Source of the DNA: Entomortierella parvispora E1425
Taxonomy: Eukaryota; Fungi; Mortierellomycota
DNA length: 64,000 nucleotides
Direction: 5' to 3'
Assembly: GCA_020891255.1 (NCBI GenBank)
Contig: BQFW01000005.1
Coordinates: 992,001-1,056,000 of the forward strand
Part shown: positions 1-20,883 of the stretch, piece after piece
Position numbering within the stretch: the first letter of the stretch is position 1
How the letters are laid out: every line of letters begins with the position of its first letter
Notes under the pieces: generated by a model
Seen by the model: only the letters and a program-made list of their open reading frames with translations
What the model was told of the DNA's origin: nothing
Databases searched by the model: none
Translations under genes and position numbers: made by a program

Positions 1-38
1 ACCAAACCAAACCAAACACCAGCTCCTCTTCTGCAACC

Positions 39-1199
39 ATGAAGTACACCATCCTCATCGCCGCTGTCATTGCCTTGGTCCAGGCCGCTCCCCTCGTTAA
101 CAACGGAGGCAAGCCCATCACCGACTCTTACATTGTCATCCTCAAGGACGGTCAGACTGCCGATACTTTCCAGCCCCGCTTTGATGACATTGCCCGCCGC
201 CAGAACGGCCGTGGTCGCAAGCCCACCATCCACCGAAAGTATGGAAAGATCCCCGGTTTCGCCGCTTCCCTTAGCCCCGCTGCCTTGAAGGAGGTCTTGG
301 CCTCGCCCGAGGTCGCCTATGTTGAGCAGGATGCCATTGTCACCATCCAGGGATCCCAGTCTTCTCCTCCTTCCTGGGGTCTGACCCGTGTCTCCCAGGG
401 CAACTTGGACTTGACCAAGCCCTACCTCTACAACGATGCCGCCGGTGAGGGTGTCACTGCCTACGTTGTCGACACTGGTGTCTACGCCGCCCACTCTGAT
501 TTCGGTGGTCGCGCTACCTTCGGTGCCAACTTCATCACCGGCTCGGCCAACACGGACGAGAACGGTCACGGTACCCACGTTTCCGGCACCATCGGTGGCA
601 CCAAGTACGGTGTGGCCAAGAAAGTCAACATTGTCGGTGTCAAGGTCTTGGACGCTTCCGGTTCTGGATCCACCTCGGGCGTCGTTGCCGGTATGGACTG
701 GGTTGCCCAGCGCGCTGTTGCCGGAAAGTCGGTCGTGAACATGTCTCTTGGCGGTGGCAAGTCCCAGGCCATCGATGATGCCGCTGGCCGTCTCTTCAGG
801 GCTAACATTCCCTTGATCGTCGCCGCCGGTAACACTGCTACTCAGGATGCCTGCACTGGATCTCCCTCGGGTGCCCCTAACACCTTGACGGTCGCTGCCT
901 CGGACAAGACTGACAAGCCTGCCTCGTTCACCTCCTGGGGATCGTGCGTTGAGATTTTCGGACCCGGTGTTGGCATCACCTCTGCCTGGATCGGATCCAC
1001 CTCTGCGACCAACACCATCTCTGGCACCTCCATGGCCACCCCCCACGTGGTCGGTGTCGCTGCCCTTTACCTCTCCTACAACAGCTTGCCCACTGCCCAG
1101 TCCGTCTTTGACAAGTTGACCTCGACCGCCACCGTTGGCAAGATCACCGGTAACCTCAAGGGATCCCCCAACAAGTTGGTCTTCAACGGTGCCGTCTAA
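39..1199 (+). CDS. Secreted subtilisin-like serine protease (S8A, proteinase K type) with I9 propeptide, intronless, 386 aa
   Basis: Signal peptide MKYTILIAAVIALVQA; propeptide ending YVEQDAIVTI; catalytic motifs VVDTG, NGHGTHVSG, GTSMATPHV; oxyanion Asn in VAAGN. Confidence 0.97.
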   Translation: MKYTILIAAVIALVQAAPLVNNGGKPITDSYIVILKDGQTADTFQPRFDDIARRQNGRGRKPTIHRKYGKIPGFAASLSPAALKEVLASPEVAYVEQDAIVTIQGSQSSPPSWGLTRVSQGNLDLTKPYLYNDAAGEGVTAYVVDTGVYAAHSDFGGRATFGANFITGSANTDENGHGTHVSGTIGGTKYGVAKKVNIVGVKVLDASGSGSTSGVVAGMDWVAQRAVAGKSVVNMSLGGGKSQAIDDAAGRLFRANIPLIVAAGNTATQDACTGSPSGAPNTLTVAASDKTDKPASFTSWGSCVEIFGPGVGITSAWIGSTSATNTISGTSMATPHVVGVAALYLSYNSLPTAQSVFDKLTSTATVGKITGNLKGSPNKLVFNGAV

Positions 1200-1610
1200 A
1201 TCTGGCCCCTTTTGGCAGATTCCCCTGAACCATTCTGTTCATTTTGAACCAACGGTTCCCCTCTTTTGTATCTAGTGCGTGTATTTAGTTGTATGTAGTC
1301 AGTCAGTCAAGTTATGACAGAAAGAAGGGGTGGGGGACAGCGTTGATCGTCTCCCCTCCCCCCCACCATTCCCTCTTTTCTTTCTCTTTTTTTTGTGTCC
1401 CTTTCCAATGACTCTTTGTTTCGCTGGTTGAAAAAAAAACATACCTTCAAAAACCTATTCTTTGACAGAATAAAAAAAATTATAAAAAAGCAAAAAAATG
1501 AAAGGATTTGGGGAGAGGAAGAGGACCCATGGGCTCTTTGATCGTTTGTTTCTTTGGTTCTCTTGTTCTCTCAATCTCCACAGGATACCATGGGTCCAAA
1601 AAAAAAAAAA

Positions 1611-1619
1611 AAAAAAATC
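1611..1619 (+). repeat. Left target-site duplication AAAAAAATC
   Basis: Identical to 17630-17638; abuts the left TIR. Confidence 0.85.
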
Positions 1620-1703
1620 GGATCCAGGACAATCCACGCCCTAATTCTCTCATTGGTTGGGATTGAGAGCTACAGTTGGCGCATCTAAGCGCCCATACGC
1701 GCT
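1620..1703 (+). repeat. Left terminal inverted repeat (84 bp)
   Basis: GGATCCAGGACAATCCACGCCCTAATTCTCTCATTGGTTGGGATTGAGAGCTACAGTTGGCGCATCTAAGCGCCCATACGCGCT matches the reverse complement of 17546-17629 at 77/84 positions. Confidence 0.93.
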
Positions 1704-2041
1704 TAGAAGCATCCAAAATGGCGAGGGAGCTTTAGTAGACTGGGCCTCCATAGTTTATTTGTGTGTTTGGACCCACACACCACATTGCTGATTGGGGCAC
1801 AGTTTATGCCATAATTTCGTCCAGTGACGTCATTATGGCGTGAATTGTCCTCCTTTCACAACGTTTTGCACGCGCGCGGCGCGTCTCGACTTTGGTTCTT
1901 GTCTCATTTGACGCTCTTCATCAACTCTATCTCGTCCCACATTCTTTCACCAACCCTCTCCTTCTCTCGCATTTTCTCGCTCCCTCGCTACTTGCAAGTT
2001 AAGTTGAGTTTAAAGAAAAGTTCCTTATGATGTTGTTGTAA

Positions 2042-2345
2042 CAGCCACCCTGGATGAGACCATGTGGCTCACAGCCATTGACATTGGAATCTGGGTGTTG
2101 GTCCATGAGATCCAGAAGGATACCTCCTCTCAACCTTTAATGAAGGATGTACTCGATTTGGAAATGGAGTTACGACAACGTCGTCTTAATGTCAGCCACC
2201 CTGGATGAGACCATGCGGTTTACTCGAGCCTTGTTTAGGGCAGTATTAACCTTTGACATGGAATCTGGGTGTTGGTGCATGAGATCCAGGCGGACACTTA
2301 ACAATTTGCTGATTGCAAGAGTTTGTTCGACCTGGAAATGTAGAC
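2042..2345 (+). repeat. Diverged tandem duplication, period about 151 bp
   Basis: CAGCCACCCTGGATGAGACCATG at 2042 and 2193; both copies followed by GGAATCTGGGTGTTGGT.CATGAGATCCAG and TGGAAATG. Confidence 0.8.
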
Positions 2346-2416
2346 ATTGGACCCATGCAGCGTAGTTGCGGAAACAATACAACTATTCGTCCACACACTG
2401 ACATTTTGTTCTTTTC

Positions 2417-3609
2417 TTGTCCTTTGAATCCCCATTCGATTTTTTGTTTTTCACAACACAAGCACGATCCACTCTTTCCGAGATGGTCCATCACAAGTTC
2501 AATGCTTTCCTTGAGCATCATACGGATCTTTCCGCTATCTCTCATTTCGACTTCTTTAATAGTTATTTGGATTTGGCGGGGGCAGATGCCTGCAATATTT
2601 GGGTGTACGGCTTGGCGGATTTGGCAAAGGATGCGGATCCAGCCACCAAGGCATCAATGGCGTTGTTGAAAGAGAAATATCTCAAGGACAAGAAAAGTGG
2701 GACTTTGAGGCAGTATTGGAACCAATGTAAACTTGAGCAAGAGGCGGAGGCGTTGTGCCGGATCAGGCCTCTGACCCTTAATGTTTTTAGTTGACGAAGA
2801 TATATCAGCGCTTCCTGCGCTCTCTCATTAAAACAGATCTCTTCTTCCGTCTCGTCATTACTCGTACCCATACTTACTCACGTTGACGGGACCCCCTGCC
2901 CCGCACAGGCGTCAAAGAACGAGGCGACAATGCAGACTGTTATGACTGTAAACCGCACAACAACAAGAGTCATGCGGTCTGTGGAGAAGCATGCCAATGA
3001 CGGTCTTGAGAAGTTTGACGGTTCCATCCCTTCAGGTAACTGGTGCTTTGATTTGATAGGTGAACACTGTTGACTTTCTCTTCAATCACCCTGCGTTCAT
3101 CACGAATTTGTAGATTTCTTTTTGCTAACATCCTTTTATTTGCATAGGTGGATGTGTTCTTGACGATTGGTCGCAACTACTAATCGGATGGAAGGGAATG
3201 TAGGGGAATGGAGATGAGTGGAAGGAGAGTTCGACCAGGTAAGGAGGTGGGCTACTGTGTGTTTGAAGCGAGTATCAAGATTCGCCCTCCATTCCTCTAT
3301 TTTCCTCTTCTATTCGCCTCCAGTCCCCCCCCTCTACTCACCCTCACAGTCTGTCGTTTTTTATATCCTCCCCCACCAACCTTCTCCCACACTTCTAGTG
3401 CTTAGAGAGACATGGCTGCCGGCACGATTGTTCACCTCAAACGAGTAGGGGTACTTGAATTGATCGCTGAGATATGGGTTCATAGCAGTAGAATTGTCTT
3501 TCAAAGAAAATATCACGGCCAGGGAACAAACAGTTCTTACGGAGGACACCAAGTTAACCGCTCATTTTTTAATAGGCTGCTAAAACCACCATGGGTGACA
3601 GAGTCCTGA
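2417..3609 (+). pseudogene. Decayed spliced gene of unknown family, reading inward from the left TIR
   Basis: Protein-like ORF 2417-2794 (..LLKEKYLKDKKSGTLRQYWNQCKLEQEAE..) continues in frame past a TGA; plausible GT..AG introns near 3036-3148 and after 3239; no family recognised. Confidence 0.35.
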
Positions 3610-4245
3610 GGTCATAAGGCACAGGAGGACCATCAGAAGTGGCTCTGAGAGTTGGGAAGATCGAACTCCTGCTTTACTGAGTCTCACCCGGCTCTGGAGG
3701 AGTGCCAACACCTCCGTTGCCTTGGGGGTCGCGCGCCATAACAGTGGCAATGACGGCGAGGATAAGGATGATTGCCTTGATATTCATGGCTAGGAGTGAT
3801 CAAGAATGCAATGAAGGTTTTAATCACTGATATGGTTTGGTGCTGAAGGACGAAAAGGAGTATATTCTTCGTAATTCTAATATTAATTCTAAAGCCGATG
3901 TTTTTGCGTACTTAATTCTCTTATTGACATCACAAAATTGATGAGATCTCTAAATGACGAAGAAGTTGTACGTAAAATATTCTACGTATCACGTGATTAT
4001 CTCTGCGTACTTTTCGTGGAGCGTGTTTTGTGTGGAGCGTGCTTTTTCATTCTCCAACCTTCTCGACCAAAGCCCATTCTTCATCCTGTCCACAGCAAGT
4101 TTGTAGACTCATATGACTCACTTGACGCAACAAACCACCAACTGTAGACTCACTTGACGTAACAATACCACCAACACTCCAATGCGAATGCCCCAATCCC
4201 CTCTGTCGGATTCATCCCGTGCCATGTTGTCTTCACCCCTTTTTA

Positions 4246-4335
4246 CAAGGCATTCATGACCAAGGCATTCATGTCCAAGGCATTCATGTCCAAGGCATTC
4301 ATGTCCAAGGCATTCATGTCCAAGGCACTCATGAC
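4246..4335 (+). repeat. 15-bp minisatellite (CAAGGCATTCATGWC) x6
   Basis: Six head-to-tail copies read directly. Confidence 0.95.
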
Positions 4336-4565
4336 CATGGCAACGTACTGCATGTGTGAGCAACACGAGGTAACAACATAAACAGTACTGAAAAAAGTGA
4401 AGCATGTTTTGAGAGACGACCTTCTTTCCTTCCCTACCTTTGACCTCTTGACCCCGCTGCCGTAAGCAAGCAATCTGGAAATGCGGTCCAATATGAACCA
4501 TGTGAATTTTGAAGAAGCGCAGAGTGAACAGGGGGCAGGACAAGAGGTCATCAAGAAACGCCACA

Positions 4566-4657
4566 CATGGTGAACAGCAGGACAACAGGAAGCGCGGCTC
4601 ATGGTGAACAGCAGGATAACAGGAAACGCGGCACATGGTAAACAGCAGGACAACAGG
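4566..4657 (+). repeat. 34-bp tandem repeat x about 2.7
   Basis: CATGGTGAACAGCAGGACAACAGGAAGCGCGGCT-like units at 4566, 4600 and 4634. Confidence 0.9.
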
Positions 4658-4947
4658 TCAAAAGGAAAACGCAAGCAAATTTCGATGGAATAATGCGACA
4701 TCATTCGACAGCAGCCCCACATAGGCGGCGCACCGACATGTCTTGGACCGACCGCACGACAGTGCAACTGAGCGATAGCACCGAAAGTAACAAATAGTGG
4801 ATACGGCTATAAAGTGAAGCGCCGACAAGGCTTCCTCGCACCTTCTCCTCTATCTTTATTCATCACAATTCATATTGACACGCCCCGCATTGCCTTCGTT
4901 CTATCAACAAAATAACAGGTAACGGAATCTCCAAGAGGCATTCTCCG

Positions 4948-5875
4948 ATGACAAAAGCTCAGAAAAATAGCCGACGAGTGATAACACGTTCGCACGCGGC
5001 GCCTCGTCCATGTACCCTCAATACATGTGGCACTGGCAGCGCCAATCAAGACAAGAGAAAGAGACAGCGAGAGGAGGACGATGACGGTCACGAGGATATG
5101 GTTCAGGTCAAACTCGAGAGTATCCGTCCGCAAAAGGGCCTAAAAGCCGTCGCCACGCCTGCCAGCACTAGCAGCACCTACACAAACAGAACCATCGACT
5201 TCAAGAAAGCCAAGCTTGGGTCTCCACGAAAGTCTGCAGACAAAAAGGAGGCCTCAGTTTCAGACACACAGGATGTATGCGGATTGTGTAATGATGCCGG
5301 GCACAAATCTGCCGAATGCGAGTAAGTTTTGCAGACTGTTATATTATTTGTATGTTTGTATCAAGCAAGACCGAAGGTGTCGTGCCTACTAACGACGTCT
5401 TCCCTCCGATGCCCATGCGTTAGATTATAGATCTGTTTGAGACTGGCAACCAACAAGGGCTCGTTACAGAATCACTCTCAAAGTCAACACCATTAAACTC
5501 TCTGGAAGCCAACGCCAACAACGAAGAGAACCGAATGCCCCTGACGTTGAGAATGGCCTACACTATGGTTTGAATTTAGCAAAAAAGGGAGAGCCACTTC
5601 CTCGTGATTTCGCAGCTTTCGAGGGGCTCGGGATCCAAGCATACGAAGCTTTAAAGAACAATAGAGCTCAGGACGTCTCCATTGATGGTGAAGTCATCAG
5701 CAAAAGTTATCAGCTATTATCAACTCTTGCTCAACTTGCGGATGACGGACTTATGGATATTGACACAAGCACCCAGTCATTCTCACCGTTCGAAATACTC
5801 AAGCTGAATGTCTCATCAACTTCGCAACGGAAATGTTTTGTCCTGACCAAGAAGCTGCGGCTTATACAGCAATAG
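4948..5875 (+). pseudogene. Fragmentary gene with a CCHC zinc knuckle, possibly Helitron-captured
   Basis: ORF 4948-5325 ends CGLCNDAGHKSAEC (CX2CX4HX4C) followed by a GTAAGT donor; a second protein-like ORF ends at 5875 directly before the helicase fragment. Confidence 0.4.
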
Positions 5876-6422
5876 ACACCGTTGCCAACGATGATGATGG
5901 AGAAGCCAGTCGCGTTATTAGCACGATCTCAAGGATTTTGTTCCCCCGGATTTCCCCCCATACGAACTACGACTGAAGCCGGGAATGCCAATCATGTGCA
6001 TCCGCAACATTGACACCATGAATGGCTTCTGTAATGGAACGAGGCGAATTGTCAAGGAAACATATAATCATATCATCATCGCCACTTTCGCAACGGGAGA
6101 GAAAGCTGGTCAGCAGGTCACCCTCTGCCCGATCTATCACCCAACGTTCGAGGACGGCTCTACGCCTGTTCCAATAACACGATTGCAGTTTCCTATTAAG
6201 CCTGCTTTCGCCATGACCATCAACAAGAGTCAAGGGCAGACTCTCAACCATGTGGCTGTCTTCCTTTCTCAGAGGGTCTTTTCTCACGGTCAGCTGTATG
6301 TCGCGCTTTCTCGTTGCACCAATCCTGATAACTTGAAGGTTTTTGTAGCAGACGGCGCTGTCAAGGGACAAGAAGGCACATACACACGTAACGTAGTATA
6401 TCGTCAGGTTTTAGAATGGTGA
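5873..6422 (+). pseudogene. C-terminal fragment of a Helitron PIF1-family helicase
   Basis: FPPYELRLKPGMPIMCIRNID..GFCNGTR, RLQFPIKPAFAMTINKSQGQTL, VFSHGQLYVALSR, TRNVVY; 5' part missing and frameshifted near 5920. Confidence 0.92.
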
Positions 6423-6464
6423 ATCAATGGTTGTTCTTGAATAAAGAAACGAGAAAAGAAAAAA

Positions 6465-6497
6465 GCTCGTGGCGATAGCCACGAGCAAATCTGCTAG
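6465..6497 (+). mobile_element. Helitron 3' terminus (hairpin plus CTAG)
   Basis: GCTCGTGGC-GATA-GCCACGAGC (9-bp stem, 6465-6486), then 7 nt, CTAG at 6494-6497, followed by T; about 40 nt after the helicase stop. Confidence 0.88.
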
Positions 6498-6779
6498 TTT
6501 TTTAGTAAACTTACTTGATGTTGTTGAGTGGGAGGAAGAGGATGAGCTCTGATTTGGAACGCGAATGTCCTTCCCTTTTATACCAATCTTTCTATAATCT
6601 GGTCTGCATTCAGTTTTCGCAAAAACGTTAGGAGTGTTGATGCATGATTCTGGGACTTTCCGTTTGGCCGGTTTCACCAAATCATGAAGCATGCGGATTT
6701 AAGACAGAACCCAAGATTTGCCGGAAGTGTGTACCGGCAGTTGTCCTGCGCCCGACAGCCCTACCTTATCAAAACCAAG

Positions 6780-7960
6780 GCAAGGTACATGACCAGCAGG
6801 GTGCATGACCAGCAGGGCAAGGAAGCATCTATTTGTCGTCCGGTCCGACAGGTCTTACTTGTCGCCCGGTTCTTATTTGTCGTCCGATGTAAGGCAAATG
6901 GCAAAACAAAAAGTTCGTTGCTGTTATTTGCCATTCTGCTGTGCTCCAGCTCTCGCAAATAAAGTTCAGGGGCAAACTGAAGCGCGAGGATGTTCGCATT
7001 TCCTTTCCTAGAGTTCAAACTTCGAAAAAAAAAATCGCGTATGTACAGTACAGCATTACCTGTATCTGATGTCGTTCACCTACCCTCTCTCTACCTCCTT
7101 GCCTGAGCGAACCTCTGAATTCTGCCCACCCCTCACGGTTCTCATATATCAAAGCGGTGATCTCATGCAGAGCCTCAATCTGTAAAGGCGCACAAAACGA
7201 TCAAGCTCAGGAAGTTCGACATCAGAAATGCAAATGCGTCGGTGGACAAAACGATATTGACCGACGGTCACATGGAACTTCTGAGAGAGATGAAAGGCGT
7301 TCCCAGGAGTGGTCTTATGACCAAACTCAGTCGATAATCGATCCATGATCATATACATACTTCCCATATCGAGGCATTTTGCAGTGGATGGCCAGGGCGC
7401 GGTACATGACCAGGGCGCGGTGCAGAAATCCAGACGAAAAATAAGAGAAGACAAATAAGAGCATTGGACGACAAGGAAGGAACTTTCAGATAGGACCACA
7501 AATAGACACTTTCAAATACAGTACACTTCCCCAAACGAGGTACTTTGCGATGTACAGTACATGTACAGAAATCCACACGACAAATAAAAGAGCATTGGAC
7601 GACAAATAAGAGAATCGAACGACATGGAAGGGGCCGTCAGACCGGACGACAAATAGACACTTCCAGCAGGGCAAGGTCAAATTTAACTGTAGGGGTTTCT
7701 TGTGTACAGCTCTCGTTGGTCTTGTTGGTCCAACTGGACAGTTTAACTCTAGGGGGTATCTTGTGTCCAACCTTCCTTTTGAGCGCTCAGTTTTTGTCGT
7801 TGGTCTTGTTGGTCTTGTTGGTCTTGTTGGTAGTCCACAGCTGGACAGAAAGCAGTTTCGTGAGAAAAACGGAAATGCGCTCTTTGCCGTCAAATTTATC
7901 TCTGGGAGATTTCTTGTGTCCAGCTCTCATATTTTTTCCGTTGGTCTTGTTGTACGGCAG
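6780..7960. repeat. Non-coding mosaic of short motifs in both orientations
   Basis: GACGACAAATA-like motifs on the minus strand (6830, 6874) and plus strand (about 7455-7660); perfect 18-bp inverted pair 6828-6845 and 7640-7657; (GTTGGTCTT)n blocks at about 7716, 7798 and 7940. Confidence 0.65.
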
Positions 7961-8051
7961 AAACCACATCGAATGTGAGATTTGACTCAATGTGGATCCG
8001 ATTGAGAGATAGAGGTAGTCTATCGGTAGTCTAATTGGAAAAATGTTGGAA

Positions 8052-8095
8052 TAGAGTCCTCCTCAGAGGTTTTGGAAACCTCTGGGGGACTCTAG
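8052..8095 (+). other. Long imperfect hairpin ending in CTAG
   Basis: TAGAGTCCTCCTCAGAGGTTT-TGG-AAACCTCTGGGGGACTCTA: 19-bp stem with two bulged T. Confidence 0.7.
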
Positions 8096-8228
8096 TCTAT
8101 CCATGTCGTTGACGTCCTACTTTCGTTTGCATGGGGCAACAAAAAACTCCAATTCGCCCATAAATCTTCGTTTTTTCATCTTCCTTGTTCTTCATTTCCT
8201 TCACTCCCTATCCTCGCATCGCACATTC

Positions 8229-10793
8229 ATGGTCACCGCCGAAGCATCCTTCACTACCTCCTTGGATGGCAAGATTGTCTATCCTCAGGTCCACCGCACT
8301 GATGTCACCTACTCTCAACACGGCGTGACGATCGCCGATCCTTATAGCGGGCTAGAAAATCGCCACTCTGAGGAGACCAAGGCTTTTATTGACGCCCAGA
8401 ACAGGATCTCGGCCGAGTTCATGAGCAAGTTTAAGGACAAGCAAAAGTTCCGTGAACGGTAGGGACAGCTCCTCATGCCTCAATTATTATTATATTATTA
8501 TTATTGTTATTATTATTATTTTTACCAGCTGAACACTTCTTTCTCGATTCGTTTTTTCTTCCTGTTTGGATCAGTTTGACAGATCTCTTTAATTATGAGC
8601 GGTGCGGTTCCCCCGACAAGTATGGCGACTATTACTACTACCTCCACAACTCTGGTCTCCAACTTCAGAGCATTTTCTATCAGCAGGATACTCCCGAGTC
8701 TGAGCCTCGCGTTTTTTTAGACCCCAACACCTTGGAGGATGATGGAACAGCATCATTGAGATTTCACAGCTTCTCTCACTCTGGAAATTTGTACGGCTAC
8801 GCCATCTCCAAGTCGGGATCCGACTGGTGCACTATTCACGTCAAGGACTGTCTTGGCAACGAGTTGAGCGATGTTGTTGAGTGGGCCAAATTTACCCAAA
8901 TTGCCTTCACCCATGACGATGAAGGTTTCTACTATTCCGTAAGTGCTACTTTTTTTTCGAATTAGTGTTTCCTTGATGGTTGACTGCGACATCTTGATAT
9001 TGCGTGGCCCATCAACTGTCCATTCATTTTGTATTATTCAAACATTTTAAAAGAGATATGAAAACTCCAATGTGAACGCCGCCCAGGCAGCAACAGACAC
9101 AGCCTCTGACATCCATCACCGATTGTGCTACCACAGGATTGGTACTCCTCAGTCAGAAGATGTTCTTGTTCACCTCAATACCGATAACCCCGTGTACAAA
9201 CACAATGCCGGAATCTCTGATGACGGAAAGTATCTCCTCATGAGCATCACAAGGTCCTGTGACCCTGCAAAGATGTTGTATATTGGTGATCTCGAGATCG
9301 CCGGAAATGTCATTACTCAGGGCTACGAATGGATCAAACTTGTTGACAGCTTCGAGGCCGATTACAGCTAGTAAGCGACAATTCTGTTTTTTTTGTAAGC
9401 TTGAAAGGGATGGAATATGACTGGAATCTGACTTTCAGTATTTAGTTTGACCAACGACGACACTGTCTTCTATTTCCAGACCAACAAGGACGCTCCTCGG
9501 GACAAGATAGTCAAGTATGATTTGGCCAAGCCCGAAGAGGTAAAAAGCACTGTACTCCCCCATGAGATATAATTGCACTCAAATGATGTGCTTCCATGGC
9601 ACTGACAGATGTTTCAATACCCCCTATTGACTCCACCACTGCAGGGTTTCGTCGACATCGTTCTTCAGGCTGATGATGTTTTGGTTGATAGCGCTGTTGT
9701 TGACGGCAACAAGTTGGTTCTCATATACATGCGCGACGTCAAAAACATTGTTGTTGTCCACGATTTGAACTCTGGACAGTTCCTCTATCAAATCCCCCTT
9801 CCCGTCGGTACCCTTGGTGGTATTGTCGGGCATCGCACAGGCAGGGAGTTCTATATCATATTTTCTTCCTACCTTACCCCTGGCACCAGTTATCGCTACG
9901 ACTTTAGCATCAAGAACCAGGAGGAACGTTTATCGATCTTCCGCGAACCAAGCCTCAAGAACTTTGATAACACGTTGTTCACGACCAAACAGGTCTTCTA
10001 CGAGAGCAAGGACGGTTCCAAGATCCCCATGTTCATCAGTCATAGGAAGGATCTGGTATTTGATGGTAACAACTCTACGCTTTTGCATGGATATGGTGGC
10101 TTCTCCAGCCTCCAGAAGGCCGCCTTCTCGCCTTCATACATTGTCTTCATGCAGCACCTTGGTGGTGTTGTAGCCGTCGCCAATCTTCGCGGTGGTGGAG
10201 AGTATGGACAGGACTGGCATCACGCCGGAACCCGGTTGAACAAGCAGAACGTTTTCGATGACTTCCAATCTGCCGCCAAATATCTCGTCAACGAAAAGTA
10301 TACCCAGCCCTCCAAGTTGGCCATTACTGGAGCATCAAACGGCGGCCTTCTTGTTGCCGCCTGTGTGAACCAGGCCCCGGAACTTTTTGGTGCTGCCGTC
10401 GTTGAGGTCGGTGTCTTGGATATGTTGCGATTTCACAAATTCACCGTTGGTCACTCTTGGCAGTTCGAGTACGGCTACCCCGACGACAGTGCTGAGGACT
10501 TTCATAACCTTCACAAGTATTCTCCCCTGCACAATGTTCACAAGAACCAGTCCTATCCCGCCGTCGCCCTGCTCACCGCTGACCACGATGATCGGGTTGT
10601 TCCCTTGCACTCGTTCAAGCACATTGCCGAGCTTCAGCACACTGCTGGTCCGTTGACCAATAACCCCCTCGTTATTCGTATCGAGGCCAAGGCCGGGCAT
10701 GGGTCAGGAAAACCTATCACGAAGCGTATTGAAGCGATTACTGACAAGTTTGCCTTTATTGCCACCTCCATTGGCGCCACCTGGAGGGATTAG
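8229..10793 (+). CDS. Prolyl oligopeptidase (S9A), 5 exons, about 717 aa, apparently intact
   Basis: Exons 8229-8458, 8575-8938, 9054-9370, 9446-9539, 9645-10793 join in frame (2154 nt). Motifs DPY.GLE, HGYGGF, ANLRGGGEYG, GASNGGLL (Ser), DHDDRVVP (Asp), AGHG (His). Confidence 0.95.
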
Positions 10794-10998
10794 ATCTAAA
10801 GGAGCTACCCGCTCTGCTCGGCCACTCTTTTCAAGGGAGGGAGAGTTTGTCGCCTGCCTTGTAGACTCGGTAGTTCCTTATGGGTAATGTCTTTCGCTGG
10901 CTATAGAAATAAAACGCCCATCGCACAAAGTTGAATCTGGACAAAAAAAAAAGAATAGCTAGAGGTGCCAGAAAGGTTACTACATTCTCTCTTGAAGA

Positions 10999-11088
10999 GA
11001 TGGAGGGAAGGAGGTGTGGAGGAAGGATGGAGGGAAGGAGGTGTGGAGGAAGGATGGAGGGAAGGAGGTGTGGAGGAAGGATGGAGGG
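10999..11088 (+). repeat. 27-bp purine-rich tandem repeat x3.3
   Basis: GATGGAGGGAAGGAGGTGTGGAGGAAG at 10999, 11026, 11053 and a partial copy at 11080. Confidence 0.95.
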
Positions 11089-11147
11089 GAGAGCCTGCGC
11101 CATCTGCAGTTCTGCGCCCTCCGCTGTTATTAACAGCCTCGATGGTC

Positions 11148-11272
11148 TGCAATAGGATTACTGGGGACTTAGTGGAGACAAGAAGTAATGTTGTAATGTT
11201 TATTATAACAATAGAAGTGAGGTTCTATAGGAATGTCAGGACCACGTGAGGTCACCGTATTACTCTGTTGCA
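11148..11272 (-). repeat. Probable 125-bp 3' LTR
   Basis: Starts TGCAAC directly after the PPT, ends ATTGCA (TGCAA...TTGCA inverted termini), contains AATAAA; no second copy in the window. Confidence 0.65.
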
Positions 11273-12420
11273 CCTTCCCCTTTTAAAAATTGAGGTCATG
11301 ATATTCTTTAAAAGCTGCGACCATCTCAGGGCTGTTGTCCAAGTTGCTTAGTGGGATCCATTCGTCGGCTTCTCTGCCGTAGCCTTTCCATGCTACTAAG
11401 AACTGGTGTTGTCGGCGGTAAAACCTATGCTTCAAAATTTCTTCCACCTCGTACTCCACCTCGCCGTCGACAAGGGTGGGGTCTGGGGGTGCTGCGACTC
11501 GAGATCCAAGAGTTTCCGGCGATGGCAAGTAGTGTCGAAAGGTGTCGACGTGAAAGACGTCGTGTATCTTGTAGAACGGGGGCAGTTCAACGCGGAAGGT
11601 GACTGGTGAGTGTTGCTCCAAAAGTGTGAAAGGGCCAAGGTACTGGGGGCGCAATTTGTCCGCTGGTCTGATGCTGTCTGCGAGGATGGTGGCATTGGTG
11701 GCACGCAATAGCACCTGGTCTCCAACTTTGAACTTGTGGTCTCGTCGTCGCTTGTTTGCCTGCTCCTCTTGGTGATCCTATGCTCGTTGTAGTGCGTCCT
11801 GGGCAAGGATGAGAGTCGTTGCCTGCTCCGAGAGAAAAGCGTCGACCGTTGGAACTGAACTGTTGGGGGGAATGAGAAGCGCCGACGGAAGACGAGGATG
11901 CTGGCCAGTGTTGAGGAAGAACGGTGAATAGCCAGTAGAAGCGTTAACAGCGTTGTTGTAAGCGAACTCCAGCGACGGCAGAAGTTGGTCCCAGTTAGAC
12001 TGCTTGTTGTCAACGAATGCCCTCAACATGGTCTTCAGTGTCTTTTTCATGACTTCCGTCTGTCCATCCGTCTGTGGGTGATAAGCCGTGGATAGCGCCA
12101 GCTTCACATCTAGCAGCTTGTGTAGTTCCTGCCAGAACCTGCTGGTGAACCAAGTGTCACGGTCCGAGATGATGGACGAAGGAAGGCCGTGGAGCTTGAA
12201 GATCAAAGAACTGGTGGGCGACGTCGACAGCAGTGGCGGAGGTGGTCCCGGGAACAAAGTGGGCTTGTTTGGTGAGCTTGTCGACTTTGACAGTGATGGC
12301 GTTGAAATTGCGGCTGGTGGGGGGTCGTTTTGCAATGTACGCTGCTGGAGGTCCTTCTGGTGTTAGATCTTCCATGGTTGGGAGAAAACGTCGCCAGTTT
12401 CCCACATAGTGGACTCGGTG
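11148..12420 (-). mobile_element. 5'-truncated, frameshifted Ty3/gypsy chromovirus remnant (integrase, chromodomain, PPT, 3' LTR)
   Basis: VDKLTKQAHFVP; LHGLPSSIISDRD..FTSRFW; STAYHPQTDGQTE; GPY/F module YLGPF..HDVFHV; chromodomain EYEVEEIL..FLVAWKGYG..DEWIP; PPT AAAAGGGGAAGG after the stop. Confidence 0.93.
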
Positions 12421-13178
12421 ATTGTGGACGACATGACGTTCAAAAGCTGATGGTCGTCAATATGGAATGACAGTGAGTAAAAGCCGCGGGAACGTCTTTT
12501 TGGTGCCTGTGGGAACGATTCTCGAAAATATACACTGGCTGGCAGAGTGACTGACTGGAGACAGGGGACAAGGGCAGGAGAATGGTGGGCAAGAGCAGGA
12601 GAATGGCGGACAAAGGCAGGAGAATAGTGGACAAGGGCCGCGTGGGTGGAGGGTGGTCAAAGAGATGAGGAAGTAACGAATTCCATCTTCAGTGGGAACG
12701 TCATTTGACCAGGATGGTGTGGCAGTGTTTATTACAGTGGGAGCGCCATTTGACTGCTTCATGGTCTGTGCTCCCATGTCTAACTTTAACCACTATCAGA
12801 TCGGAGCACCATTCTTCTTTTTTTAGGTCTAGGTCCTTGTGGCTGGTCACTTGCTGGAATTTCTGGAGGCTCGGTTACAGTTCTCTTTGTACTGTACAGT
12901 ATCAGTACAGCACATGGCTCAACCCTCCCTCCTGCCAGTGCAACCAACAGCCACATAGAGCTATTCATCTGAAGAAGCAAGAGAAGAAGCAGAAGCGCAC
13001 TCGCACTGTGGACTATATATCTATACTTCTGACCTACCCCCCAACCTGCATCCACCCACTCACCCACTCTCACCCACTCTCACCCCACTTTAATTTGCAC
13101 GTGTTTTAATGTCAACTAACAGTACCCCTTAAGCGACCGACTTTCAGAAAGATAAGAAGAGAGATGTTGTTCGTAAGA

Positions 13179-13481
13179 ACAAATCTGTAGAACAATGGGC
13201 TTAATTTCAGCAGCTCGTATCAACAAGGATACTCGTCTGCTTACAATACCCCGTTCAATTAAAGTCGTCTGCAATGGATTTATCTCTTCCAATATTTGAA
13301 ATTAACATTAGCAGGAGCCTCATAAAGCCTTTCCGCTCTACAAGACCACCCCACGTAATATGATTCAGGGACTTGCGTCCTATTCGTATTCAACTAAAAA
13401 TCGGAAAAGGCGGTAATCGTCGCGTTCTAGCACGGATTCTGACTTAGAGGCGTTCAGCCATAATCCAACGGATGATAGCTT
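13179..13481 (-). rRNA. Isolated 3'-terminal fragment (about 303 nt) of 28S/25S rRNA (rDNA pseudogene)
   Basis: Minus strand reads AAGCTATCATCCGTTGGATTATGGCTGAACGCCTCTAAGTCAGAATCCGTGCTAGAACGCG ... GATAAATCCATTGCAGACGACTT ... AACGGGGTATTGTAAGCAG ... GCTGCTGAAATTAAGCCCATTGTTCTACAGATTTGT, matching the conserved fungal LSU 3' end as I recall it. Confidence 0.93.
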
Positions 13482-16400
13482 GGTGGTGAAAATGCTTGCA
13501 ATGCGTGCAATAGAGCTGCCGGATGGTTACTCGAGCAATGAAGTTGCGACAATTGGGGCACTTTTGCGAAGTATAATACTCGTTGATGCCTACCACCAAG
13601 TAACCAAGGGAGCGTGCCTAATTGAAAAAAAAACAGAGTAAGTTATCACTTGTCAAGACTGTGCTACTTGCTCCAGAGAAGGCTGGTCATGGTGAATTGT
13701 TTTTGACTTACCAGAGGGATGAAATAATCAAGAAATGACGAGCGCAGAGATGACAGTCGACTGGAGCTCTTGAATTGCCCCAAGCCGACTCCGATTATAA
13801 CACGGTTGTTTGGGTCGCGATGTCGTCCGGTAGTCCCTCCCACTATTCGTAGCAACCTCTCGGCGATTGCCTGATACTCGGCATGTTTGGCTCGTTTCAT
13901 GTCCCAGGTATGCCTTTTAAACCGCCTATTTCGGCCATTATAAAAGGTGCTCAGGCGTTCTTCGACCTCCTCTATTTTTTTGACATACTCTTCCACGCTT
14001 GATTGTGAGCCTCGAAGAGGAGGGAGGTTCGATTCGATGTCCGATATAGATGACGGTTCAGCCTCCGTGACAACGCCTTTCTCTGTGTTTAGCCATCTTC
14101 GGTATCGAAATACAGATTGCATTACCGCCTTTTGGTTAACAGCAAGATTGAGGTGAACGGGGCCGTCTTGCTCTGCATCTGTTGGTCTTGTCAGATCCAC
14201 CGATATGTCCATTGTTGTAGAGAGAGCTCCGTTCCTGCCAGGTAGATATGCGTACGCCCCAACTACGAACGCTTGGCCGGCATCTAGAGTCAAGATTTTG
14301 ATATCCGTAGGACGCGCACCGGGCCACAGCTTCTCGAAATCCATGTCGTCCTTGACAACATTTCTGATCTCTTGCAAATAGGAGTCGGTTCCCCCAACTG
14401 TGGATGATATTCTCGGTGGAAGACGATCGGGGGGGAAGCCGCCGGCATCGGACGCACTGAAGCTCTCGAAGCTTATAGGCAAGCAAGTATACTCTGAACC
14501 CATCTGTAAGGATGGAGCCCCTAGATACATAGCCCTTGACGGTATAGTCCTTTGGGTCGAGTGTTGGATCATCTAGCATGCGAAGGTGCCTCCTGAGAGC
14601 TTTGAGTGACATGAGCTTGATTGCTGCACGATGTCCTGCCTTGCCTTTCTTGCGACTTGTGAGATCTGAGGGGTCGATATCGGCAAGGTAACGTTTCGAG
14701 AGATAACCGGGCTCCTTGGTCCCGACCCATTCTTGCACATCCTGAATAGTCGGAGCCACCCCTTCATTAGATGCTAGCTCCGTCAACGATGTTTTGAGAT
14801 CGCCTCCTCTTTTCATGAAAAATCCCGCCAGCTCTCGCTCAGTAAACCAAATGGCTGCTCTACTGATGTCATGGGAGCGATTCTCCGGGGCCGTTGGATC
14901 AACTTGTTGAGCGAAACGTAGTTTTCAACTGCGGAGACGTCATCTCGAATGAGTATCTGTGTGTTGTATCCAAAATCCCGAGATCCTTAGCCTTCTTGAG
15001 CTAGAATAAATAGATCGGAAACGTGGCTGTGGTTAGCATTATGGATATCAAGGTATTCTCAGATATTCTTCACGTCTTACCTTATTGTGAATTATGCATG
15101 TCCCATGCTTATACATCTTTTCAAGCTCAGCCTTCAGCTGCGTGGCCACTGAGCGTACAAGATCCGTGGGAGTAAAGGGCATGTTTGATTCGTTGATATC
15201 AACGGACGGCGAGACGTAGATTCCAAGTTCCGTGAGCCGATCGATAAATGCATTGACCTTGTCCCCCATGGAAGAGGGTCTCGGTCGTTTTCCAGAGTAC
15301 ACTACTCGTAGAAAGCTCCAGATAAATGGTGCCTGGACCTTGTCATCCTTCTTTTTTTTTGTTGTGCTCGTGCTTGGTGGTTGCAGGTCACTATCGTCGC
15401 GCTCTACTTCAGGCTCTCCATCGTCGGGATCAAGTTCAGCGTCCACAAGACCGTTGATCTGATTGTCGTCTTCCTCATCCGCAGCAATGTCGTCAGTATC
15501 CTTCACGTCCTCCACAGTAACAGGTTGACAGAGGTGGCGCAGGATTTCCTTGTCTACAGAGCTGATGTGGTCGATTCCAATCTTGTCCAGTTTTTCGATA
15601 TAGCAGCCAATCAGCCTCTGAGCTTCACGCTTCACTCGAGCTGCCTCGCTTGTCGCTCCCTGAATGACCTCCATAACTTCCTGCTGCAGGTCCAGCTGGT
15701 TAGGAAGCGCAAGTCTGATATTTGCCTTCAGAGTACCAATGCTCAATGAACTTGTTGGGTGGTGATAGGCCAAATGTCGAGTTATCGCCAGCTTGTCTGT
15801 TGCAGCCGTAGATTTTGACAAGGTCTTCAAAGTGGGTGGGTCCTTTGGAGCGGATGTCTCCTTTTTACGCTTAGTCTCAGGATCCTTGTATGGTTTGTAT
15901 GCAAGCTGCTTCATTATTGGGGGTCGTGGATGCTCCTGAGTCCCCTTCCTTGACTTGAACGAGTATCTTGGCTGATGGCGAGGGATTCGTGTTCTTTGAA
16001 GTGCTGGGTGTAGTGCCTCTCCTGTCTGGTTGCCGTGTGACGATGGGCGTCGTAAAGGCGAGGCAACATTAGAGCCGGGAGAGATGGACGAGTCTTGAGG
16101 CTGCTCAACCGGAGGCGGTATGGTGATACGTGCTCGTGTCAGGCGAGAGTGCTGTATTGCAGGTGACTCTACCGTCTTGTAGCGGTTGCTGGTTGACGAT
16201 GATCGCAACCGAATGATATCCATGGAGTTGCTATAGTTATCAAAACAGTATGATGAATACAAAAATTGGCTCATTTCCTTTCATATCTTGAATCCTGAGC
16301 TGTTAAATAGGCTTTACCTGCTGTTGAAAAGTCATTTGGAGACTTCTGTTTTGTTGATATCGTTTACAGAGGTCCATAAATCTTTGGCGAAGAGCGTTAA

Positions 16401-17400
16401 ACGAAGAGTAGGCAGAATCTGATATCTGACGAGTGCTTGGCGTTTGCAGCTGGTCCGCAAGGACTCGAAGAGCGAGTTCAAATGTCTTGTCGCAGGTGTT
16501 TTTGGATTGGACACGCTCGTGCTCCAGATATTCCGACACAATCGACCTAGGATCTAAAGACGACAGTTATTGTTTAACGTGTGAACGGGATGGCAAATCA
16601 AGACATTACAGTCGTCTCATTTGTTTCATACCTTCGCCCTTGCTGTTCATGATGACAGAAAGGCTGGTGACTGGACCAAGCGAAAGGATGTTCCTGCCGT
16701 AGTCATTTGACACCACACAAGCAAGAGCCGTGAGCTGAGCTGATGACAATCCAAGAGTCTGGCAAACATCTGCGCGACTGTAGGCCAGATGAAGTCCGCG
16801 AGAGATGGGTCGCCAGAGCGTGTAGATAGTGCCATATGCAAGCATGTCACTGTCAGCCGATATGACAATGTCCTCTGGCCGGCAGTCCGCCGCGATGGCA
16901 ACATCAGCCTCTGTTTCACATATCCGAACAGTCCATCCAGCTTTGTGCAGGTAGTCGATGAATTCTTGGCGAACTGAGGATGGCCAATAGAAAAGTGATG
17001 CAAGGCTCTTCTTCACATCGACGAAATGTCGCTTCCTAGCCTTTTGGTTGTTGGTGACTCGTTGTTCGAGTGCGTCAAGGTTCTTGTAGCATTTTTCAGC
17101 GGCTTTGTCACGGTTGGCCTTTCGTTTTTTTGCTGTCTCTTCTTTCTCCACCGCTGCGCCACCATCAATATAAAGAATGAGTCTATCCTTCCCGCCATAA
17201 CGCAAAAAGTTTGCTTCAAGGACCTGGTGCGCTTCTTCGGGTGCCTTAAAAGAATATGCGTTGCGAATGATAGAGTAAAACGACAGTACATCAAGACGTT
17301 TTGTACGATCGGTCATAGTTGACTTCACGTTGGAGGGATAAATGACAGAAGGTTCATAGCCCTTTTTGCGCAAAAAGGGGAACCAATCTTGTAATCCCAT
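13444..17400 (-). pseudogene. PIN (XPG/FEN1-like) nuclease fused to Fanzor/TnpB-like RuvC and Zn-finger; 5 exons, about 1,190 codons, frameshifted, 3'-truncated
   Basis: Exons about 17400-16632, 16553-16318, 16230-15081, 15000-13712, 13617-13482. N-terminal MGLQDWFPFL..RLDVLS..LYIDG..ETEAD..SADSD..SNDY; C-terminal SILTDG, ILTLDAGQ (RuvC-I), VVGINEYYTSQKCPNC (RuvC-II plus CxxC), LYCTHC, then HH and a break where RD is expected. Confidence 0.85.
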
Positions 17401-17545
17401 TAGAGGCACGATTTGGAGGATGAGTAAAGAGCAGATGATGAAAAAGTGGAAAACGATGTAGATGTGTAATGGTGCGAAGGGTTGTCGCTGGTAGCGTGTA
17501 ATGAGGAGCGTGGGGGAGCGAGGAAGAAGGTATATAGAAAGAAGG

Positions 17546-17629
17546 AGCGCGTATGCGTGCTTGGATGGGCCAACCGTAGCTCTCAATCCCAGCCAATGAG
17601 AGAATTAGGGCGTGGATTGTCCTGGAGCC
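17546..17629 (-). repeat. Right terminal inverted repeat (84 bp)
   Basis: Reverse complement matches 1620-1703 at 77/84 positions. Confidence 0.93.
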
Positions 17630-17638
17630 AAAAAAATC
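17630..17638 (+). repeat. Right target-site duplication AAAAAAATC
   Basis: Identical to 1611-1619; abuts the right TIR. Confidence 0.85.
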
Positions 17639-18746
17639 GCGTTACGTCACCGAAGCTGAAAGTGTGAGCAAATGTTACATAATCACGTGCTTGCGACGGC
17701 ATCTCTTTGGAGCGCGTGCAACCAATCAAAGGGCCGAAGGGATAAAATTAGCCCATGGGCGGACCAGAAGGGCCAAAGGGAAAGGGACGGGTCAAACGGG
17801 CGAACGGACGGACGGACGGATGCTGTGGAGACACGAAGAACACGGAGGCGGTCCTCATTATTATTTTTCTGTCAGTGTGTTGTTTTGTCTCTGTCTGTCT
17901 GTTCTGTCCTGTTCAGTGTCTGTCCTGCGATCAGCAATGTCCATTCCCTTCATTGGGACCAGGGCGATGAAGAAGCAAGACGAGACGTGAGTGGTCGAGA
18001 GAGGAGTGGTCGAGTGAGTAAGAGAGTGAGTAAGAGAGTGAGTAAAAAGAGAGAGAGAAAGAACGGGCACACCAGACCGACTGACTGACAGAGAGAGAGA
18101 GAGAGAGAACAGCCAACAGACAGACAGACAGACAGACAGCCCTTTGTCACTATGGCACACACACACACACACACACACTAACTCACACTCTTTTTACACG
18201 CACTTTCTTCGTCTTTTCTCACTCTCTCTCTTTCTCTCTCTCTCCCTCTCCTTTCGCTGTTGATTCCATCCCCCTCTTTCTTTCCTCTTCTCATTCCCTC
18301 ATTCTCTTTCCTTTCCTTTCCTTTCCTTCCTTCCTTCTTTCCTTCGACGTGTTCAGTGTTCATTCCTCCCCTTCCTTCCTTCCTTCCTTCCTGCCTCATC
18401 CGACTCTTTCTTCTTTCTCTACTCCTTGCTTACTTCTCGCCATCCTCATCACACCGCATACGCACTGCACCCACACCCACACACCCACACCCGGCTCGCT
18501 CAGTCTTTCCTTTCTTCCTTCTCTTTCCCTTCCCTTTCCCTTCCCTTTCCCTTCTGTCCGCTCACCATTGCACAAAAAGGGCACAGCCGCAACTCTGTTC
18601 TCATTCCTCTTTTGTTGTTGTTGTTGATTGACCTTGCACCACCTTCACTTTTGTTTGCGTCCCTGTCCGTATCCGTGTGTGTCCCTTTGCTCCGCTTTTT
18701 GTCTCATCTCCTTCCCTTTCCTTCATCCATCTCGAGAACATATACC

Positions 18747-20883
18747 ATGGACTGGTCCGCGTCCTCTTCCTCGTCCTACTACCCACAGCACCCTCCCTAC
18801 CCCTACTCGACAGAGCGCATTGCCGACCTCTGTCTGCTCAAGCTGCAACATGCCTCCTCGGGCAGGACACAGTCGCTGCTGCGTCAAGTGCAACTGACAT
18901 GGTATGTCCCACATCTCGTTCTTGTCAAGAACAGGAAGCACAGCTAACCCAAGAGCATCGCAAACTAACAGACTTACCTTGTCCTACACACACAACAGCA
19001 TGCTCCATCGGATCAGGATGCAGGCCTTCCTGCGCCCTGTCATGGCTGGATATCATCCTCATTATCAACAACAACAACAACAACAACAACAGCAGCAGCA
19101 ACGGTATGACCAGCGCTATGAGCAGGGCCATCTGGACCTAGAGGACGACTCGTCGTCCGACTCGGACCTTGCCTCGGATGCCTCATCTTCAGTCGTCGTC
19201 TCTGCCCCCGCCCTTTCTTCGCAGTCGACCTACGACTGGGACTTGGACATGCTCCTGTCCATGAGTACCGCTTCGCCACCACCTTCAATACCCTCCTCCC
19301 CCTCCTCCCCCGTCTCTTCAGACTCAATAGCATCTGCTTCGCCCGCAGACGCAGATCCAGACCAGACCATGTTTGCACTCAGTCAACATCTTCACCAGCA
19401 GCACCACTTATCTTCCATCCCCATGGTCCCCTCCTATACCTCCGACTATGCTTCAGAAGAGTCATCTTCCCCTTCGATCGAGGCTCTGCAGCAATCATTA
19501 AACCACTCTCCACACACGACCTCGATCGCTTTGTCCTCCATCCCCTCCGACTTAGCTCAGCAGCAGCAGCAGCAACATCCACAGCCAAGCTACTACGAGT
19601 TGCTTATGGCCGCCAACCCGAATGAACCACTCTCACAGCTCATGTCCACCACAGCTGCAACGATCGCCTCTTCATCCTTTACGGCGCCCACGTCTATTTC
19701 CGCACCCCCTGCACCTCCGTCCTCGCTGGAACATTCCTCGTCCTATTCCCTCCTCGATGGCTCCGTCCCTCGTGCCCCAACGGCCAACACAACTGCCATG
19801 CCTCGCGCAGAGGATGTTCTGACCTCCGTCGCCACGACCTTTGTCCTGAGCAACTACGCTACTGCCACACCTGCAGCCACCTCAGATGCGCTGGGTTCTA
19901 TTCCTCTGACGACTCGGGAGATCATGGATGCACTTTCGGGTCAGTTCCCCATTCAACAACCACAGTCCTTGCCTTCCGTGTATTCGCCGCAACATGCAAC
20001 TGAGGCCTCCTCCGCCATAGATACTGTCACTGATGCTGCCGACAACGTGGAGCAGACGTCAGATGCAGACGAGTGGCAAGGAGACAGCGACATGATGAGC
20101 CCACCGGCCCAAGCCTACCATCATGGTCAACAGGACGACTCTACGGAAACGACTGTAGATGCCGTGGATTCCAGGGGTGAGGAACAAGAGAAAAGTAGCC
20201 CCATGGAAGGTCAGGAACTGGACCAGGACCAAGAAATGGAGGATACGGGATGCATCTCCCCTCCGCTCTCTCCCACCACCCCCAAGCGAGCCTCGAGAAG
20301 AGCCTCCATGTCGCCTCGGAGCAAGCGCCTTTCTCGGACTACACGTCGACAAAGCGATCCATCCGGATCCATTGATCAGCTGCTCAATGCATCGTGTGCT
20401 GCTCTCGACTCTGTGCCCTCCACCGAGGATCCTGCTGCAAGCCACAAACGCCGCCGCTTGAATCTCGAGGAGGGCTCGACGTCTCCTTGCTCCAGTCCGG
20501 AATCATCCCCCCCTTCCCCAAAGACACCACCACCACAATCGGACATTCCTGCTCCTGTTCAAGGACAGTCTCTTCCTGAAGGTGTTGACCACCCTCCGCG
20601 GGAGGAAGATCTCGATCATGAAAGGCAGTTAAAGTCCGAGATGAGCAACGTTGCACAGTTGGTGGAGGATGTGGTAGACAGCTTGAAGAGCATGGCTCCC
20701 ACCGCGGCAGGTCTGATGGAGACTGAGGATGCTGGCGTTCTCTCTCCATCTCTCCTTGCTCGTTACCCCAAACGGCAATCGACACGACTTCTTCGCCGGT
20801 CGCACGGTCTGCCTTCTAGCAACTGCAGCCCACAGGACAATGAGACGCATTTGTTGTCGACGGGCAAAGTATCTGCGGCATAG
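18747..20883 (+). CDS. Low-complexity (Q/S/P-rich) protein with an N-terminal SERTA-like motif, 2 exons
   Basis: Exon 18747-18901 splices in frame to 18999-20883 (TG|GTATGT...ACAG|C), giving ERIADLCLLKLQHASSGRTQSLLRQVQLTCMLHRIR. The SERTA label is by-eye similarity. Confidence 0.75.

Follow-up and report, generated by a model that had tools for sequence, protein, structure and literature searches.

Two 5′ ends of a Fanzor-bearing, Mutator-like family probably bound a 16-kb composite transposon in Entomortierella parvispora

How did 16 kb of DNA carrying a peptidase gene, pieces of other mobile elements and a fragment of ribosomal DNA (rDNA) come to lie between two genes of the fungus Entomortierella parvispora E1425, and what kind of element are its ends? 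The block lies in a 64,000-nt stretch, called the window throughout (assembly GCA_020891255.1, contig BQFW01000005.1, here C5, positions 992,001 to 1,056,000 of the forward strand); coordinates given without a contig name are window positions. A first-pass annotation, made from the sequence alone, had read the block as a single giant Pack-MULE-like vehicle, that is, a Mutator-like element (MULE) carrying captured host DNA between terminal inverted repeats (TIRs) of 84 bp, with a 9-bp target-site duplication (TSD). We find instead that 1620-17629 is probably a composite transposon (macrotransposon), the outer ends of which are two 5′ ends from two members of one Fanzor-bearing family.

An inverted-repeat search of the window returned a pair of 84-nt arms (1620-1703 and 17546-17629) that are 92% complementary over a spacing of 15,842 nt, a match far beyond chance. 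By direct reading, the 9-mer AAAAAAATC is present at both 1611-1619 and 17630-17638, with the left tip (GGATCC...) starting directly after the first copy and the right tip (...GGAGCC) ending directly before the second. Both the repeat and the flanking 9-mer were as the first-pass annotation had described them. The left arm is preceded by a run of 20 A residues (1598-1617) and then TC, and the right arm is followed by A7-TC; the 9/9 identity of the outer flanks therefore takes in the non-A bases TC. A length of 9 bp falls within the TSD range of the Mutator superfamily (8-11 bp, about 9 bp). The features at the termini are:

1611-1619, no strand: left TSD copy, AAAAAAATC, at the end of the 20-A run (direct reading).
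17546-17629, minus strand: right arm of the 84-bp inverted repeat; it forms the 5′ end of a truncated Fanzor element (direct reading, inverted-repeat search).
17630-17638, no strand: right TSD copy, AAAAAAATC (direct reading).

A genome-wide search with window 1611-1760, the check proposed by the first-pass annotation, matched 14 places. Four loci besides the window have the 84 bp separated by ~4.5 kb, on the same strand, from the 55-153 bp that follow them directly in the window. The family is ~4.75 kb long, non-autonomous, flanked by TSDs of 8-9 bp and present in ~8 copies, at least six of which are near full length at 95-97% identity (on contigs C8, C13 (twice), C11, C12 and C4). Its true TIRs are short and imperfect, roughly 20-35 bp, and its termini read GGCTCC-AGGACAATCCACGCC... 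(5′) and ...GGCGTGAATTGTCCTCCTTTC (3′). Read against the full-length copies, the 84 bp appear as the 5′ region common to two separate family copies and not as the TIR of one giant element, and this part of the earlier interpretation falls away.

Full-length copies contain a single, multi-exon gene. Its N-terminal XPG/PIN-like domain is weak and below the Pfam cut-off, two further exons have no Pfam match, and the last exon matches PF07282, Cas12f1-like_TNB (E 7e-12, 45.7 bits, cut-off 26.3). D...E...CxxC...CxxC...RD motifs were seen by eye in the translations. The predicted product is a Fanzor1-type TnpB homologue, with a C-terminal RuvC carrying a zinc-ribbon TNB domain. Note that the genome holds many Fanzor paralogue families (60 matches).

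The family TIR core, extended by TAATTACGTCACC, also terminates ~160-bp miniature inverted-repeat transposable elements (MITEs) and other short derivatives. Perfect TSDs of 8 bp flank two simple family insertions (AATTGTGG at locus L017 and AGTTGGAG at L020), and the C4 copy has a TSD of 6/8; among the MITEs, L050 has a perfect 9-bp TSD (AATATAGGC) and L049 one of 8/9 (AAAAAAAT). The TIR core AGGACAATCCACGC-AATAATTACGTCACCGG lies ~1.3 kb upstream of open reading frames (ORFs) with FAR1 and MULE domains at C6:195.9-201 kb (the MULE match, E 5e-8, passes the Pfam cut-off and the FAR1 match, E 2e-5, does not). The Mutator affinity put forward in the first-pass annotation is supported by the TSDs of 8-9 bp. 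The TIR core near the C6 ORFs may mean that the transposase acting on the family is a MULE, a link weakened by the C6 element itself, for which a second TIR was not found. When Fanzor and MULE matches were compared genome-wide, no pair lay within 10 kb. The MULE transposase domain PF10551 had no match in C5:993.6-1009.6 kb, an interval that encodes no transposase, and the ORFs tested there and in the full-length copies of the family showed no transposase domain. The block and its bracketing elements are non-autonomous. A Starship-type or other giant element was rejected, there being no recombinase or transposase domain in any tested ORF.

Two members of the family stand at the borders of the block:

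1620-1858, plus strand: 239-bp internal-deletion derivative (MITE-like) of the Fanzor-bearing MULE family (genome search, comparison with full-length copies).
13482-17629, minus strand: 3′-truncated copy of the 4.75-kb element, matching family positions 59-4177 at 94.8%.

The left element consists of the 5′ 84 bp (1620-1703) fused to the 3′ 153 bp (1706-1858) of the family. Both of its TIRs are intact, its own 3′ TIR being at 1858, and the 239-bp form occurs once in the genome. Its own flanks, AAAAAAATC and ACAACGTTT, match at only 4/9 positions, i.e. it has no TSD of its own. The right element is without the last ~630 bp of the family element, the 3′ end having been taken by a 1,086-bp deletion in the window; since its inner end is deleted, its own flank match cannot be scored. 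It is 98.0% identical to the C11 copy and ~95% identical to the others. The XPG/PIN-Fanzor gene in the window has lost its C-terminal RuvC-III part, is cut before the RD motif and has shifted frames relative to the intact protein, and is therefore a pseudogene. Two separate elements at the borders, a TSD around the whole unit and a left inner end without a matching partner are together what a composite transposon should show. Because the two ends come from different elements, the left one of which keeps its own 3′ TIR, a macrotransposon is a better description of the block than a Pack-MULE-like vehicle, and the latter is abandoned here. Another outward-facing pair of 5′ ends was seen at C13:2478095(+) and C13:2512513(-), 34 kb apart; its outer flanks are unlike, and there is therefore no sign of a second macrotransposon there.

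If the block is a single insertion, the genes on either side should be neighbours in genomes that lack it. On C5 it sits between a subtilase gene (39-1199) and a right-flank gene (18904-20883). In L070, a metagenome contig of 4,575 nt from a related fungus, the matches to window 774-1498 and 17682-21471 follow one another with only ~155 nt separating them, and the insertion site is represented by one ...AAAAATC.... Contigs of E. beljakovae and M. claussenii, which are more distant relatives than the source of L070, carry both genes in the same orientation at distances of 1.9 and 2.7 kb, and the intervals have no calls. Locus tags of the subtilase and right-flank homologues are consecutive in five Mortierellaceae species; for M. 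sp. AM989, M. sp. AD011 and M. alpina, adjacency is suggested by the tags only. The true neighbours were recovered by searching with the right-flank gene. The best subtilase matches in E. lignicola and M. claussenii (L068, L069) proved to be paralogues that have nothing else in common with the window, and were discarded. A second subtilase paralogue, with ~50% amino acid identity to the one at 39-1199, lies in the window at 37752-38374 (minus strand).

According to the first-pass annotation, finding the prolyl oligopeptidase (POP) gene of the block at the same syntenic position in relatives, without the TIRs, would have pointed to two short elements. No POP gene was found between the flanking genes in L070, E. 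beljakovae or M. claussenii, where these genes are adjacent. That the 16 kb are one inserted block with a 9-bp TSD, as first proposed, is supported by the joined flanks of L070, by gene adjacency in the relatives and by the absence of a TSD around the left element alone. Two independent short insertions around long-resident DNA would fit with arms that belong to different elements and with the recurrence of A-run targets. We nevertheless regard this explanation as barely credible: the flanking genes are adjacent without the cargo in relatives (the empty site of L070 and the gene order of L072/L073), the left element lacks its own TSD, and the subtelomeric paralogue of the cargo, described below, ends at a TIR tip.

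The insertion site resembles those of other family copies, and the target preference of the family is strong. The relevant feature in the window is:

17642-17655, plus strand: TTACGTCACCGAAG, a variant of the A(n)-TGACGTCACCGAA motif; most copies of the family are inserted next to that motif.

In 6/8 of the 5′ flanks examined, TGACGTCACCG(A) lies 8-10 nt outside the tip; five of these are exact and that of the window's right copy is the variant TGACGTAACGC. The genome (39 Mb) has 26 occurrences of the 12-mer TGACGTCACCGA versus 4 of a reversed control, the 12-mer often having an A-run before it and AATTATTT after it, and A(n)-TGACGTCACCGA-ATTATTT is enriched, being concentrated in subtelomeric and small contigs. 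Unoccupied copies of the motif seem, by eye and without gene calls, to lie a short way upstream of start codons. The empty site inferred for the window, A20-TC-GCG-TTACGTCACCGAAG, is one such site; a CACGTG/CCAAT block, conserved in L070, begins to its right after ~45 nt. In the superfamily, the canonical TIR contains ACGTCACCG ~27 nt from its tip, a stretch that the 5′ end of the Fanzor family has lost. Conceivably the Fanzor-bearing family is site-directed, with the motif read either by the DNA-binding domain of the transposase or by a Fanzor-RNA complex (as a target-adjacent motif (TAM) or homing signal). We consider this idea unlikely; were it correct, element pairs would serve as programmable carriers, taking genes from subtelomeres to core-gene promoters.

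Where the block came from can be approached through a paralogue of most of its length. Two parts of the cargo are distinguished:

1859-3597, no strand: single-copy cargo that has neither a Pfam match nor a paralogue elsewhere in the genome.
3598-13481, no strand: cargo paralogous (97-99.4%) to subtelomeric C11:37084-47612.

With the right element included, the paralogy spans window 3598-17629 and C11:37084-52860 at 97-99.4% identity, the C11 locus being 37-53 kb from a contig end. The C11 Fanzor element is full length except that the final ~9 bp of its 3′ TIR and the TSD are missing. At both loci the paralogy stops at the 5′ tip of the element, and beyond it are a different copy of the motif and then unrelated sequence. 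As homology ends at the TIR tip in both loci, the 5′ end and more than 10 kb of 3′-flanking DNA must have relocated together at least once. The crippled 3′ end of the C11 copy would favour the use of a distant substitute end. A TSD partner or second TIR for the C11 copy was not found, and its left boundary, 37084, is without a TIR. No second copy of the whole unit was met elsewhere in the genome: C11 shares the right end and 10 kb of cargo, without the left element and 1859-3597. Approximately 1 kb to the left of the C11 paralogy boundary, at C11:34916-36076, there is a 5′-truncated Fanzor gene of a second family (43-55% amino acid identity).

The closeness of the right element to the C11 copy (98% versus ~95% to others) lends itself to a stepwise account, in which a simple insertion made the TSD and the interior was later replaced or expanded by gene conversion or break-induced replication from a C11-like locus, primed inside the Fanzor element. 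Gap repair from ectopic copies is established for cut-and-paste elements and is known for Ac/Ds and P elements. The copied tract, however, would have had to stop exactly where an inverted 239-bp derivative, found nowhere else in the genome, has its 5′ tip, and that tip would have had to join the old TSD precisely, both of which make this account quite improbable.

The composite transposon would have formed as follows. Two family members, the 239-bp derivative and a 4.75-kb XPG/PIN-Fanzor carrier, would have faced each other in inverted orientation across ~12-14 kb of a subtelomeric, rDNA-proximal region. Acting in trans, a MULE transposase would have paired their two outward-facing 5′ TIRs (GGCTCC/GGATCC-AGGACAATCCACGCC...), and everything between the paired TIRs would have been cut out or copied, both ends moving in a single event. 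The block would then have integrated by way of a 9-bp staggered cut into an A-run just upstream of a TGACGTCA-type promoter motif on C5. Later, a Helitron and an 844-bp MITE would have entered the block, and a ~1.1-kb deletion would have stripped the 3′ end from the Fanzor element.

Arrival without a transposase, through break repair by copying or ectopic recombination from a subtelomeric template, would make the TIR-tip ends and the flanking 9-mer coincidental, helped by the A-run. The cargo does have a subtelomeric paralogue, subtelomeric families such as POP are multi-copy, the TSD is of low complexity and the left boundary of the C11 paralogue (37084) has no TIR. Such a route leaves unexplained why both block ends match TIR tips to the base, why the flanking repeat includes the non-A bases TC and is of a length typical of the superfamily, and why the site lies beside the motif preferred by the family. 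We judge it unlikely.

Several observations weigh against the composite transposon and should be considered together. The 9-mer alone is weaker evidence than (1/4)^9 would imply, because the TSD is A-rich and elements with this TIR superfamily often sit beside A-runs. Both perfect TSDs of simple Fanzor-family insertions are 8 bp, compared with 9 bp around the block, and the link to a transposase consists of one TIR at one locus. In this genome there is no donor locus that has the left element together with 1859-3597. L070 is from a different species (77-83% nucleotide identity) in which ~100 nt around the site align poorly, and all of the genomes with an empty site are from other species, none being conspecific isolates. 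No read or contig was obtained across either outer junction (for the left side, short-read contigs over window 1-6000). Contigs from short-read run X1, which probably comes from the sample that was assembled, end at 1587 and resume at 1829, breaking at the A-run and repeat, and strain X3 departs from the window already at 1565, not at 1619; its contig of 5,330 nt covers 20-1565 and is followed by 518 nt unlike anything in window 1-6000.

Other searches aimed at the junctions were also negative. A 30-letter loose-end consensus at 1814, a mix of two contigs, had no match in the genome, and neither the exact right junction nor the right flank was matched when metagenomes were scanned. Both flanks are single-copy in the genome, which holds no second copy of either, i.e. 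no paralogous empty site.

A break in contigs at repeats beside a homopolymer, with no short-read contig crossing, is also what would be seen if a C11-like subtelomeric region had been chimerically joined into C5 during Nanopore assembly. We hold such a misassembly to be very unlikely. Between the block and C11 there are differences of 1-3% and several kb-sized indels, and 1.7 kb of the block is unique. Two internal boundaries are supported by X1 contigs, which bridge the 3′ end of the MITE-like derivative into unique DNA (1829-2783) and the 3598 boundary (2881-3627), and a perfect TSD is unexpected from a misjoin. The published Nanopore assembly of E1425 has a long-read coverage of x409 (PMC8759367).

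The contents of the block were examined using Pfam and Rfam, and the list given in the first-pass annotation (an intact host enzyme, a Helitron end, a long terminal repeat (LTR) remnant, rDNA and a PIN-Fanzor gene, without a DDE transposase) was borne out. From left to right, the cargo contains:

3866-6497, plus strand: Helitron-like insertion that starts with TC and ends with CTAG, with a Pif1-helicase C-terminal remnant at 5985-6422.
6821-7664, no strand: TIR element, non-autonomous and ~844 bp long, its TIRs being 29 bp (GGAAGCATCTATTTGTCGTCCGG...) and its TSD ~10 bp (AGCAGGGCAA) (inverted-repeat search).
8103-10793, plus strand: prolyl oligopeptidase (S9) gene, four exon-like ORFs (Pfam).
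11100-12320, minus strand: Ty3/chromovirus remnant, with integrase SH3 and chromodomain at 11283-11714 (~40 genomic copies, 77-79% identity).
12914-13481, minus strand: rDNA fragment, 28S 3′ end and downstream spacer, adjoining the Fanzor truncation point.

The POP gene appears intact from its predicted domains, matches covering Peptidase_S9_N positions 2-405 and Peptidase_S9 positions 3-211. Its family has at least eight paralogue loci in the genome, several of them near contig ends. The (ATT)n intron of the C11 POP paralogue contains a 4.7-kb insertion (C11:38524-43225) that the window lacks and that has no DNA-level relation to the Fanzor family. Whether the nested pieces had arrived before or after the block landed was left open by the first-pass annotation, and comparison with C11 dates them relative to the divergence of the paralogues. 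The Helitron-like piece and the 844-bp TIR element are absent from C11 and were therefore inserted after that divergence, whereas C11 also has the chromovirus (LTR) remnant, the POP gene and the Fanzor element, which are therefore older.

The rDNA fragment is 93% identical to the ends of contigs C16 and C18, and the Rfam model LSU_rRNA_eukarya matches 13181-13553 on the minus strand (127.8 bits). The rDNA pieces in the window and C11 may differ in origin, because a shared 56-nt piece is only 91% identical and 512 bp of the window rDNA are missing in C11. Two deletions seem to use this 56-nt piece as a common endpoint, near the junction 13481/13482. Within the single-copy cargo, a ~150-nt stretch (~2754-2907) reaches, in three runs, 12-35 times the short-read contig depth of its surroundings; it has no repeat within the window. 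Taken as a whole, the cargo resembles a subtelomeric, rDNA-proximal chunk and not random host DNA, and we infer a subtelomeric source from the C11 paralogy and the rDNA.

If the composite transposon is real, Mutator-type elements in early-diverging fungi can move whole genes, over many kb, by pairing the ends of two non-autonomous copies, even when one measures just 239 bp. This would provide a route for relocating or duplicating members of subtelomeric gene families, here a prolyl oligopeptidase, into chromosome-internal promoters. It would also be a natural case in which a MULE transposase apparently needs no more than two 5′ ends, and would mean that Fanzor-carrying elements take part in large rearrangements.

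The composite principle is known from maize and from bacteria. Pack-MULEs of plants are single elements, usually under 5 kb, in which captured gene fragments are enclosed by the element's own TIRs. The block shares with them Mutator-type ends, a 9-bp TSD, a host-derived interior and the absence of a transposase, but two distinct elements bracket ~12 kb that include a whole gene and other transposons. As in Tn5 and Tn10, two inverted copies would mobilise the DNA between them through their outer ends; here, in contrast, the system is a eukaryotic MULE one and the bracketing elements are without transposase and unequal (239 bp versus 4.1 kb). In maize Ac/Ds macrotransposition, two closely linked cut-and-paste elements reportedly move together, and a macrotransposon, Tam3L, is said to exist at the White Cap locus. 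The block is like these in that its outer ends come from two elements, the intervening genes would move as a unit, the TSD is of the length expected for the family and the inner flanks are orphaned. It is unlike them in being Mutator-like and not hAT, in using two 5′ ends, one of which belongs to a 239-bp derivative, and in having a Fanzor gene aboard; and, compared with Ac/Ds, the host is a member of the Mortierellomycota and the event is reconstructed from sequence, not seen genetically.

Fanzor1 genes have been described in non-autonomous elements of the MuDR superfamily with 9-bp TSDs in Mucoromycota (Bao & Jurka, PMC3627910). The 4.75-kb family fits that description: it has no transposase, a Fanzor1-type TnpB homologue, MuDR-like TIRs, 9-bp TSDs and an early-diverging fungal host. 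The elements of PMC3627910 are simple, single ones for which no composite mobilisation of flanking genes is described; the XPG/PIN-like domain and the preference for TGACGTCACCGA are seen here. A report of composite mobilisation by Fanzor-bearing MULEs in early-diverging fungi was not found in the literature. What would be new at this locus is the use of Fanzor-bearing MULE ends in a Mortierellomycota fungus, the pairing of two 5′ ends, and the movement of an apparently intact gene from a subtelomere to a core promoter.

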